The notes beneath the pieces were generated by a model, which made no database searches, was not told the DNA's origin, and saw nothing but the letters and a program-made list of their open reading frames with translations. A DNA stretch of 64,000 nucleotides, taken from positions 3,235,628 to 3,299,627 of the forward strand of contig OZ037771.1 of NCBI GenBank assembly GCA_964035545.1. Reading direction: 5' to 3'. Of the stretch, positions 7,158 to 35,263 are shown in pieces (the stretch's first letter is position 1; each line of letters opens with the position of its first letter). Origin of the DNA: Bugula neritina. Lineage: Eukaryota > Animalia > Bryozoa. A program made the translations under genes and the position numbers.

Positions 7158-10100
7158 TTATACCTGCGTGTTGAGCGTTTCCTGCAAGGTTTTTCGCCTC
7201 GTATTTGGACTTGGAGCTATTCGCGGTTTGCTCTGCACGCTCTCAACAGGCGTGACGGAGCTGATACTCTCTGTCACTGCTTCATTTGGGTTGTCTTCCA
7301 TGTTCACTCTCAGTGTCTGGTTTTTCTACAAAATCGGCAAAATAAAGAACTAGGTATTTGTTTTAGTACTTTGCCAATACTGCTTAAGCAATAAATTAGT
7401 CTAAATTAACCTAGCGCAGAGAGGATATATACAAAAATTTCTGAAGAATAAACTGCTTTTTACAAATACCTTGCTAGCAGGAGCAGACGATCTCACTTGT
7501 GGTACAGGAAGTTTAGCTCCCTTTTGGTTTGACTGTACAGTGTGTGGTTTAGAGACAGAGAAATCTACGTTCTCGTATGGCTCAAAGTTGTTATGCATCA
7601 CTGCATTATTTATATAAGTGTGTTCGTCATCTAAGGAATAGTTCAAGCAAATATAAGAGATTTCACGAACAAAGAAAAATGTAGAGAACGCAGTAAACAG
7701 AAGCAAAATATTACCATAATCTTGTTATAAAAGAGACTTGTTAAAGCGAGAAATTTAGCTATTTGAGTAAAAATAGTAGCAGGGAACCTAATTCTTACCA
7801 GCTGCCTTAGTGCGGGGAGCTGGCACAACTGTATCAAACTGCTCTCTAGACATTGGTGTGATCCTTGCTACAGGTCTGAGGTGTTCATCACGCTCCAACC
7901 TTGACCCTAGCTGATTTTCAACATTCTGATCCCCAACGCTATCCGGTGAGCTCAAACTACGCTCTAAATAATCAACAAATTTGAATTAATAAAGCAGATG
8001 AATTGACTAAACCACCAAATAGTGATGATCTTTCCAGAATTATGCTAAAGTTAACCATTCAAAGCATATTTCACTGCAACATTTACACTCCATGACAGAG
8101 CGAAAAACAAACTTCTTCATGATCGAGATGCACTCTAACACTATGCTTCCAAGCTTCGAATTATGCAAATAAAGTTTTCATTCGATGTTCAGATACAATT
8201 TCATCAAATAAAATCACAACCATGAGTTCATGCAAACCTCACTTCCAAAAATTCATCCATATATGAACATCCATTCGTATAATGCAAAGCAATGAAAACG
8301 CAGTGTAAATGTAAAGTCTTTAGGTTATTATTGTAGCCCAGAAAGCATCAAACACTCACCCACTAAGGGTTGCCTGTGCAACCGTCTGCGCTTTGTCTCA
8401 ATGTCTGCTTGTACATCTGCTTCACCTGTTAAACTGTGACAAAAACAATGAAATAAACATTAGAGTAAAAAATTATATTAAATCATTAAACAGTAATTGC
8501 ATTTATGTAGAACTAAATGAGCAATAGAAAGTAATAGACTTGAAACAGTAGGTGTGGAAAAAAATTCACTTAGCAGCTTTAGTAATGGGGAGTATTACAT
8601 CATACATGTTATCTGGTCTGAAAACGCATGCAGCATGCTGCGATAGAAATTATGGCATCATAGCTTTTGGTACAGCTGAATAGTATTTTAAACCATCTAC
8701 AATTCAGACGGAAAAACTGAATGAGTCAATTGGATGCACACAACTCACTCTGATTGGTCAGGACATGTGCCAATGGCATCAAACTCTAAGTAACCATCAG
8801 ATGCTATGTTAGCCGTGGCATTCAGTTCAGTAGACATCTGTTCCTGAGATATGGAGGCTAGCGGATTACTCGGCGTACTTGAAAGTGAAGGTCGGCTAGA
8901 CTTCCTTAGAAAACAAAACTATGACTCATTATCAGAAGTGCATATATTTCAGCCAATGGTAACATAGATACTTCGATTCTTTCTTGTCATTCATCAGACT
9001 AGAGGTTTATTTACAAGCTTCATTTTGTTATCAATTTTAAATAATATTCTTAAAACCATACACTGTTGAGACTGTCAAAATTGCACACATTTTGAAAAGT
9101 AGTTAAAATATTTATGCAAAAAATTGTCTATGCGGTCCACTATGCCATATAATATTAATGCCTTGGAAATATATTATGTCCATGTCTATGAAGAAAATAC
9201 AACTTTCTACTCCCCAATCTGTAAGAAAATGGCCATTCTGAATGATGCTCTGATGTTATTACTTTAAATCATGAATATGAAAAAACTGCATCTTTATATT
9301 GTGGCAGTACTAAAACAAACCCCAATAATTTCTGGATTTATGTTAGTTACCGATTCAGAGCTGTTACTCAGCCAATCAGCCTCATGAGTCGAATTGCTTA
9401 CCAGACAGGATTTGCTTCCATATACGCCAGACTATCCTGTGAAGCAGATCGTTTGTTTACTGGTACCTTCATAGAGAGAGAAACTCTGGGGGTCGGGGAT
9501 ACGGGAACTTTACTTTGCTCACACGGTAAACAAGTGCTCGAAGTTTTTCTTACCTGAAAATGAAAATACTTTCTATCTAGTACAAAAGATTACAACTATC
9601 AAAATAAAGTTTTGCATTGTACTAACTAGAAAAAGCTATCAGTCCGTGCAACTTAAGAGCAAACATTGGCACTACATGGCAATTTAGGATATTCTTTAGT
9701 GCACTTGTTACTATAAAGAAAGAGACATTTGAGAGGATAAAAATTTATTACATTCTCTATTGATAGATTTAGCTCCATCAGCTGTGAACAATACAAGAAG
9801 TCATTAGTTTGATTTATGAGACAGGTGACTCCAGCATGAACCTTCCAGAACAATCAATTAATAGTCGTCTTACAAACTGAACGGCCACCAAATTCTCATT
9901 TCACTAGAATAAAGTACAAGTCGTAAATTATTTTTTAAAACAAACAAATCTTCTTACCGGTTTCTTGAAGCTATCTGCCGAGTCAGAAGAAGGTTTGGCA
10001 GTCCAGGTTTGATTTCGAGCTGATCTCGGAGATACGGGAGAGAGAGCAAATGGAGGTTGCTGAAGTTGGTTTTCTGGCATTTGTGGTGGACTAGACGGTG

Positions 10101-35263: not shown

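Follow-up and report, generated by a model that had tools for sequence, protein, structure and literature searches.

Can a receptor tyrosine kinase of the MET type do without a Sema domain? MET-family receptors are defined by an ectodomain composed of Sema, PSI and IPT domains, and the question is raised by a gene in the genome of the bryozoan Bugula neritina. This gene lies on the minus strand, from position 35263 down to position 7158, of a 64,000-nucleotide stretch of contig OZ037771.1 (assembly GCA_964035545.1, positions 3,235,628 to 3,299,627), which in its full length is referred to here as the window. The evidence presented below makes it very probable that the gene encodes a Sema-less receptor tyrosine kinase, with a head made of a laminin N-terminal (LN) domain and laminin-type EGF repeats, an IPT stalk, a MET-type kinase domain and a long cytoplasmic tail.

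The exon structure of the gene was derived with a simple program of our own, which chains exons on the basis of GT-AG splice sites and codon bias and was trained only on the homology-supported segments; searches on the window used single exons, one at a time. The resulting chain comprises 38-42 phase-consistent exons, from 35254 to 7158. An earlier interpretation of this DNA, made from the letters alone (the sequence-only reading), had proposed a continuous frame of 41 exons. The phase-consistent chain from head to kinase stands, and the exon count is to be taken as approximate. The program recovered two exons of that reading, 27034-26887 and 26713-26571, as well as its acceptor at 16103, and the two junctions it had quoted, 26887/26713 and 22001/16103, proved to be exact when read base by base. 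All homology-supported exons are open and phase-consistent.

The gene thus modeled spans about 28 kb, and its approximately 40 exons add up to about 5.5 kb of coding sequence. The window is AT-rich (32-41% G+C) and contains short exons, CA/TG microsatellites and long terminal repeat (LTR) retrotransposons. The predicted product is a type I protein of about 1,800 residues, in which a signal peptide would be followed by an N-terminal region of about 300 residues, an LN-like domain, about two laminin-EGF repeats, three to four IPT domains, a transmembrane helix, the kinase domain and the tail. Exons 1 and 2, when joined, encode a typical signal peptide (Table 1). The chaining program picked the second in-frame ATG, at 35254, and a further in-frame ATG at 35058 would likewise yield a signal peptide. 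As judged from its sequence, the encoded protein is secreted and inserted into the membrane in type I orientation, and its tyrosine kinase is intact.

Architecture of the gene and its relatives

Three relatives of the gene product were identified. In a search of a library of 1.84 billion proteins, the activation-loop exon of the kinase matched mostly exon-sized fragments, and a Pfam scan of the long matches revealed a protein of the annelid Owenia fusiformis (CAH1784899.1, P0058; UniProt A0A8S4NT35, 'Tyrosine-protein kinase receptor'). In this protein, Pfam recognizes Laminin_G_3 (177-277), Laminin_N (326-471), four EGF_laminin, TIG and PK_Tyr (1165-1420) domains. The other two relatives were found by a search with its kinase region. 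One of them, P0175, shows the same Pfam set as the Owenia protein and is encoded on a 4.8-kb Logan contig (L003, run SRR32924703). The only long open reading frame (ORF) of this contig consists of 1265 uninterrupted codons with untranslated flanks, and we infer that the contig is an assembled mRNA. The other, P0169, is an 'uncharacterized protein' of the bryozoan Watersipora subatra (XP_067935788.1), for which Pfam reports a weak Laminin_N match, TIG and PK_Tyr, and no Laminin_G_3.

By tblastn, the three relatives match the window collinearly, over a span that runs from about 30800 or 29870 to 13880. A profile built from them was compared with every one of the window's 2253 ORFs, on either strand, and it too gives matches in order, with E values of about 1.8e-7 to 0.004 for four IPT exons and 6e-5 to 6e-22 for six kinase exons; those of two laminin-EGF exons and of the transmembrane exon are given in Table 1. 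When the Watersipora protein is placed on its own 20.7-kb locus, many of its introns are found to be common with the window, including those at the exon ends 364, 646, 700, 738, 975 and 1039.

The Owenia and Watersipora relatives resemble the product of the window in the order of LN, laminin-EGF, IPT, transmembrane helix and MET-superfamily kinase, and in the tyrosine motifs of the tail. They differ from it in that identity is only about 30-60% per exon, and in that the predicted tail of the window is about three times longer. In addition, Owenia has four EGF_laminin domains and a clear Laminin_G_3; in the window and in Watersipora the laminin-EGF repeats number about two, and Laminin_G_3 is not detectable. 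These sequence comparisons indicate that the gene belongs to a conserved, unnamed lophotrochozoan family, whose known members are one annelid, one bryozoan and one transcriptome sequence in addition to the window, in a phyletic census that is incomplete. Word-based searches for homologues, made with the Owenia head and with the three-sequence alignment, returned laminins and no further family members, and a metagenome scan with a head exon of the window gave no match. The public entries bear uninformative names ('unnamed protein product', 'Tyrosine-protein kinase receptor', 'uncharacterized protein'), and full-text searches turned up no paper on a MET-like kinase with an LN or usherin head. 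By these names and searches, the architecture is not that of an already named family.

The head and the stalk meet at an intron of 173 nucleotides, of GT-AG type and phase 0, after which the first IPT exon opens (AG/26713) with GAT CCA TAT and reads DPYLDK. That is, a laminin-EGF repeat is joined directly to the first IPT domain. In Watersipora a phase-0 intron occupies the same position, with C600, the last laminin-EGF cysteine, on one side and H601, the first residue of IPT, on the other, and the junction of the Owenia protein aligns too. On the head side of this intron, the Pfam EGF and EGF_laminin matches of the first laminin-EGF exon fall in the ORF 27377-27255. The last head exon gives a Pfam EGF_laminin match at 27063-26830 (E 2.9e-4) and a tblastn match to the Owenia protein (E 2e-4). 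No FN3 or LamG match was obtained in Pfam scans of the window exons.

On the other side of the intron, the best solved match of the first IPT exon is IPT2 of MET (E 9e-4), followed by plexin-A1. Of the six further stalk exons, three score E values of 0.001-0.004 with the family profile. In comparisons with Watersipora the stalk exons reach shuffle z scores of up to 12.5, and their boundaries are largely those of the Watersipora gene. The Watersipora stalk itself matches the IPT domains of plexin-A1 (E 4e-13) and MET (E 3e-12), and the stalk of the window resembles the two about equally. The label of a plexin-B-like stalk, given in the sequence-only reading, is not upheld by these results, as the best matches are MET IPT2 and plexin-A1 IPT, with no plexin-B chain among the matches listed.

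The kinase domain is encoded by six minus-strand exons, which match the Pfam PK_Tyr_Ser-Thr profile collinearly, at profile positions 2-38, 42-94, 99-134, 135-189, 188-233 and 234-256. The catalytic motifs are all intact, PVKWMA included, and the twin activation-loop tyrosines are present (EYY). The activation-loop exon, whose splice sites are AG and GTGAGC, has MET kinase domains as its best solved relatives; the N-lobe exon best matches AXL and MER in the PDB, and then MET. The first kinase exon ends where the Watersipora exon 973-1039 ends. It is followed by a kinase-splitting intron (22000-16104) of 5897 nucleotides and of GC-AG type, with donor AAAT/GCAAGT and acceptor AG/16103. Given the GC donor at 22001, gene finders that accept only GT mis-model this first kinase exon; our own GT-only program ended it at 22085.

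The position of the family among kinases was assessed in a maximum-likelihood tree of 39 kinase domains, in which the kinases of the three relatives represent the family. The three LN-headed relatives fall inside the starred MET-superfamily clade (support 98/99), which also contains an Owenia kinase with Ephrin_rec_like and TIG domains, a TIG_2-PSI-TIG kinase, Sema-bearing invertebrate Mets, and vertebrate MET and RON. The starred subclade (97/94) that unites all Sema-bearing members does not include the LN-headed kinases, which are not resolved as a clade of their own. Exon by exon, the kinase of the window is closest to that of Watersipora and about equally close to the Ephrin_rec_like kinase of Owenia.

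Two short contigs are closest to the kinase exon of the window: L001 (ENA ERZ23487535, BRYA16-1), with 85% amino-acid identity, and L002 (Logan SRR25569779), with 76%. Their nucleotide identity, of 77% and 76%, is confined to exons, and at 1.1-1.6 kb they are too short to reveal an architecture. One of them derives from a metagenome, with a label that hints at a bryozoan sample.

The LN label of the head would follow by transitive homology through the relatives. The head of the Owenia protein matches the solved structures of laminin beta-1 LN-LE1-4 (E 2.8e-24) and netrin-1 (E 2.7e-12). In the window, the assignment rests on exon 29225-29093, which is similar to residues 319-362 of the Watersipora protein (z 5.7) and to residues 293-333 of P0175 (z 6.1), with 0 of 200 shuffles reaching either score. 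Both segments fall in or overlap the Pfam Laminin_N matches of these relatives, and the end of the exon coincides with the Watersipora intron at residue 364. The cysteine-motif exon just before it, compared with Watersipora residues 280-328 by local alignment, gives a marginal similarity (z 3.1, equalled by 2 of 200 shuffles). That of the predicted distal LN exons (27956-28664) to Watersipora residues 406-445 is also marginal (equalled by 6 of 500 shuffles), and an exon may be missing around this region. The second of these exons, 28099-27956, ends directly before the first laminin-EGF cysteines, with a motif that resembles the family consensus FVINE..V.G.C.CNG.

Pfam searches with single head exons, at E values up to 10, gave no match in the interval 34513-27955; with about 50 residues, such exons are shorter than the Laminin_N and Laminin_G_3 models require. 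Ahead of the 'ECxCP' anchor the model has about 300 residues (exon 2, five predicted exons and the start of the next exon), compared with 268-292 residues in the relatives, and the N-terminal exon set is therefore roughly right. Alignments of the N-terminal exons with the relatives, in restricted space and with hhalign, are not significant; a single weak match links exon 30794-30634 to the Laminin_G_3 part of the Owenia protein, and it lies where collinearity would place it. The head had been described in the sequence-only reading as usherin-like. The order of LamG_3, LN and laminin-EGF is indeed significant in the Owenia protein and in P0175, but the LamG-like part is undetectable in the window and in Watersipora; a LamG-like identity of the N-terminal region in the window is plausible from these comparisons.

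Taken together, the exon chain, the junctions and the relatives with the same architecture bear out the central proposal of that reading, namely that a MET-type kinase, IPT domains and a transmembrane helix are joined to an LN/laminin-EGF head in one gene.

Table 1. Predicted exons of the receptor gene, from its start to its stop codon, and the retrotransposon inside it
Feature	Position in window	Strand	Basis and remarks
Exon 1	35232-35263	-	ATG at 35263, donor GT after 35232, read directly
Exon 2	34777-35011	-	Hydrophobic core of signal peptide and start of ectodomain; acceptor AG just before 35011, phase fits exon 1
Five predicted N-terminal exons	34441-34348, 33362-33188, 32580-32502, 31991-31869, 30794-30634	-	Splice/coding program only; LamG-like region of the sequence-only reading
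Cysteine-motif exon (ECYCPYTHP) just before LN-like segment	29719-29904	-	Alignment to Watersipora, collinear tblastn
LN-like exon	29093-29225	-	Shuffle-tested similarity to two relatives
Two predicted distal LN exons	28664-28516, 28099-27956	-	Exon chaining
Laminin-type EGF exon (CGC...YRCLC...GKYCE)	27256-27360	-	Pfam EGF E 0.0033, EGF_laminin E 0.037; family profile E 0.016
Last head exon, laminin-type EGF ending ...AGPKC	26887-27034	-	Splice sites AG/27034...26887/GTACGT read directly; family profile E 0.0011
First IPT exon	26571-26713	-	Pfam TIG E 0.011 (weak, 26713-26564); family profile E 1.8e-7
Other IPT stalk exons	26438-26259, 25631-25514, 25156-25037, 24318-24164, 23927-23839, 23119-22992	-	Exon chaining
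Transmembrane exon, basic KRRLNK after helix	22527-22743	-	Family profile E 0.0026; z 9.6 against Watersipora 906-965
Juxtamembrane and first kinase exon (GQGHFG, VAIK)	22001-22204	-	PK_Tyr 2-38; GC donor 22001/GCAAGT read directly
Five further kinase exons	16103-15910, 15477-15368 (HRDLRAAN), 15040-14875 (DFG, EYY, PVKWMA), 14606-14470, 13993-13880	-	PK_Tyr 42-256
Ty3/gypsy-type LTR retrotransposon	16429-21903	+	Antisense inside intron 22000-16104
Tail, about 11-14 predicted exons, about 600 residues, S/P/D/E-rich	7158-13538	-	Exon chaining; stop codon 7160-7158

Alternative readings of the locus

Several points weigh against a Sema-less, LN-headed receptor kinase with a long tail. The gene model is a prediction from genomic sequence. 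Its N-terminal exons (35011-30634, about 290 residues) have no significant Pfam, pairwise, profile or hhalign match to anything tested, and the LN exon 29225-29093 has no direct match in Pfam or the PDB, where the search gave chance hits only, and scores only E 1.7 with the family profile. The kinase is linked to the tail through a weak donor (G/GTATAC at 13880), and an in-frame stop at 13846 would otherwise end the protein. A 5.5-kb retrotransposon in the kinase-domain intron could disturb expression. Finally, what is said below of ligand, dimerisation and adaptor use is reasoned by analogy.

The weak donor bears on the reading that the protein ends at 13846, just past the kinase, and that the S/P-rich exons 13538-7158 belong to another transcript or gene. 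Consistent with this reading, the tail exons show no Pfam domain and no significant homology, and the tail of the relative on the transcript contig is only about 18 residues long. However, exon 13538-13389 has a strong acceptor and a strong donor, and it requires an upstream exon in just the phase that the donor at 13880 supplies; the exon chain, moreover, required no plausible initiator exon. The predicted tail also contains the tyrosine motifs LDYMNPN, DGYLEF (twice) and PYENVDF. Among the 78,556 residues translated from the window, the patterns [DE]GYL and YEN.?DF are confined to these exons, and they are seen again in the Watersipora (DEGYLAPI, AYENDF) and Owenia (DGYLVDY) tails. The bidentate docking site YVHV/YVNV was not seen in the predicted tail exon peptides, a difference from MET and RON. 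The signal AATAAA is present at 6700 and 6655. We infer that the tail exons are attached to the kinase, and regard termination at 13846 as unlikely.

The introns of the tail contain two AT-rich tandem arrays with a 13-nucleotide unit and about 15 copies each (10238-10438 and 10915-11114), which flank the tail exon 10833-10700. These arrays yield long pseudo-ORFs on the minus strand that are rich in Tyr, Ile and Leu.

A further possibility is that the gene is a decaying or silenced copy, with an intact frame and with expression or function lost, for example through the retrotransposon in the kinase intron. This Ty3/gypsy-type element looks young. Its direct repeats (16429-16553 and 21779-21903, 125 nucleotides) are 95% identical, and its pol ORF (17771-20815, 1014 residues) contains RVT_1, RNase H, Integrase_H2C2 and rve domains; a gag-like ORF of 284 residues is also open, and there is another ORF of 203 residues. 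Long open gag and pol ORFs inside the kinase intron would suit a silenced copy, as would an N-terminal region that is highly diverged from the relatives. Nevertheless, the element is intronic and antisense, the homology-supported exons are open and in phase with every catalytic motif preserved, and the N-terminus of Watersipora is similarly diverged, with no Laminin_G_3 recognized by Pfam. A silenced copy is thus improbable.

Still less probable is that two adjacent genes have been read as one, that is, a secreted netrin- or laminin-like gene with LN and laminin-EGF domains and a separate IPT-kinase gene. The fusion would then be an artefact of the sequence-only model and, in the other species, of the annotation pipelines. 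One article states that novel domain combinations in invertebrate genomes are often errors of gene prediction (PMC4967905), and the gene model here is predicted from genomic sequence. Yet the phase-0 GT-AG intron between the two parts, with its 173 nucleotides, is too small to accommodate a terminator and a promoter together with a signal-peptide exon, and the IPT part has neither a start codon nor a signal peptide of its own in the exon chain. The position of this intron is common to Watersipora, the Owenia model has the same order, and a single uninterrupted ORF runs from head to kinase on the transcript-like contig L003. Because the relatives are collinear with the window, L003 carries a single ORF and introns are common to Watersipora, a gene-fusion artefact is ruled out for practical purposes.

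There remains the question of whether a Sema domain has merely been overlooked. Seven MET-type relatives, of which six have a Sema match and one has PSI and TIG_2 only, supplied Sema/PSI parts for a tblastn comparison with the whole 64 kb, which gave only chance matches (E >1), plus one IPT match. Pfam scans of the window exons revealed no Sema, and the position of PSI is occupied, as the laminin-type EGF exon ends at 26887 and the first IPT domain begins at 26713. In addition, since the upstream neighbour is an opposite-strand Kazal gene with a BEL/Pao-like element, no Sema exon is hidden further 5'. The absence of Sema and PSI, noted from the letters alone, is therefore confirmed by the searches with the relatives' domains. 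An ordinary MET orthologue with a very divergent Sema-PSI head is hardly conceivable: the kinase and IPT exons are MET-like and the N-terminal 300 residues have no assigned domain, but the Sema/PSI queries match nothing in the window, laminin-type EGF exons stand immediately before the first IPT domain, where PSI would sit, the heads of the relatives match Laminin_N, Laminin_G_3, EGF_laminin and laminin beta-1/netrin structures and not Sema, the approximately 500 residues ahead of laminin-EGF are too short for a Sema propeller plus LN, and the kinases of the relatives lie outside the canonical Met clade.

The sequence-only reading had explained a Sema-less, LN-headed receptor by exon shuffling that swapped out the Sema propeller. 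This does not hold as a recent event here, since the family is conserved between the annelid, the bryozoan and the window, and its kinases lie outside the clade of Sema-bearing Met, MET and RON. The sequences rather indicate that the LN-headed family is old and conserved. The receptor may have arisen through replacement of Sema or through independent assembly.

Neighbouring genes and repeats

Upstream of the receptor gene, the other strand carries a gene that encodes Kazal domains and is accompanied by a BEL/Pao-like element. At least 4-5 ORFs with Kazal-type protease-inhibitor half-domains (CxxxCxxxYxPVCGS[ND]GKTY) are found between 38774 and 57108 on the plus strand, and these are probably exons of one multi-Kazal gene. 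Among them lies an ORF of 913 residues on the minus strand (47047-49788), with a DUF1759 match and CCHC-like zinc-knuckle motifs, which is probably part of a BEL/Pao-type retroelement.

The introns of the head and stalk contain repeats at 33463-33846, 29459-29687, 28948-29088, 25677-25745 and 34661-34766. These are a (GT)n microsatellite of 384 nucleotides, a 20-nucleotide minisatellite (11 copies), a 43-nucleotide repeat (3 copies), (TG)34 and a triplet array rich in GCA and AGT. The repeats yield long spurious ORFs (poly-Thr-His, poly-Leu, poly-Ala) that adjoin real exons.

Relation to known receptors

The product of the gene shares with MET and RON (the HGF and MSP receptors) the IPT stalk, the single transmembrane helix, the twin activation-loop tyrosines and, to judge from its relatives, a kinase of the same superfamily clade. 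It differs from them in having no Sema or PSI and in carrying a head of LN and laminin-EGF, and the kinases of its relatives branch outside the clade of Sema-bearing Met, MET and RON. Plexins combine the Sema-PSI-IPT ectodomain with a cytoplasmic GAP, whereas the window encodes a tyrosine kinase and neither Sema nor PSI. Usherin (USH2A) consists of a LamG-like domain, LamNT, ten laminin-EGF repeats, many FN3 and two LamG domains, and has no kinase. The Owenia protein and P0175 are like usherin in the order of Laminin_G_3, Laminin_N and EGF_laminin. Unlike usherin, the window has about two laminin-EGF repeats followed by IPT, transmembrane helix and kinase, without ten repeats, FN3 or LamG arrays. 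The short arms of laminin beta and gamma and the netrins also combine LN with laminin-EGF, and among solved structures they come closest to the family head; these are, however, secreted matrix or guidance proteins, without IPT, transmembrane helix or kinase.

Two other groups of invertebrate receptors invite comparison. The Met-LP receptor kinases of Lophotrochozoa and Echinodermata (Junqueira Alves et al. 2019; PMC6374515) are likewise MET-like kinases of invertebrates, lophotrochozoans among them, with a non-canonical ectodomain, but they keep Sema, within a complete plexin ectodomain. Because the survey of Met and Met-LP searched by the Sema domain (PMC6374515), it could not find a Sema-less, LN-headed family. 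In Owenia, moreover, a second Sema-less IPT-kinase receptor is encoded by CAH1793778.1 and its isoforms (P0040/P0283/P0284), with a head of Ephrin_rec_like cysteine-rich repeats. Its kinase belongs to the same clade and is as similar to the exons of the window as that of Watersipora, whereas its ectodomain shows no similarity to the window. The existence of this receptor suggests that a variety of heads have been joined to the cassette of IPT, transmembrane helix and kinase.

The known protein-protein contacts of laminins and netrins are made by their LN and laminin-EGF domains, and by this comparison the head of the receptor would bind an extracellular protein partner. The sensing of matrix, put forward in the sequence-only reading, would be a conjectural role. 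If signalling resembles that of the MET family, ligand-induced dimerisation or clustering, through the rigid IPT stalk and a transmembrane helix rich in small residues, would bring the kinases together. The kinases would then trans-phosphorylate the EYY pair, and phosphotyrosines of the tail, including those of the Grb2-SH2-type YxN motifs YMNP and YENV, might recruit SH2 adaptors.

Judged by sequence, the gene is a member of an undescribed Sema-less, LN-headed branch of the MET superfamily, and not a one-off. The surprise is moderate, because invertebrate receptor kinases often bear unusual ectodomains, and new ectodomain-kinase combinations are common among them. A more far-reaching proposal, which we put forward tentatively and regard as possible though doubtful, is that the MET superfamily has, in addition to the Sema-bearing Met and Met-LP, a third and ancient branch made up of the LN-headed IPT kinases, and that their LN head reads the laminin network of the basement membrane or a partner of the netrin-receptor type directly. 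If this is true, then, together with the Ephrin_rec_like-IPT kinase of Owenia, it would mean that the IPT-transmembrane-kinase cassette is ancestral and that the heads, Sema included, were attached to it.

The gene shows a conserved MET-like receptor without Sema and with a head of the laminin/netrin type, which, if confirmed, widens the MET superfamily. Confirmation would also make the order of domain acquisition, with the IPT-kinase cassette first and the heads later, testable by phylogeny, and would provide a candidate for a lophotrochozoan receptor in which an interaction of the LN domain is coupled directly to tyrosine-kinase signalling.

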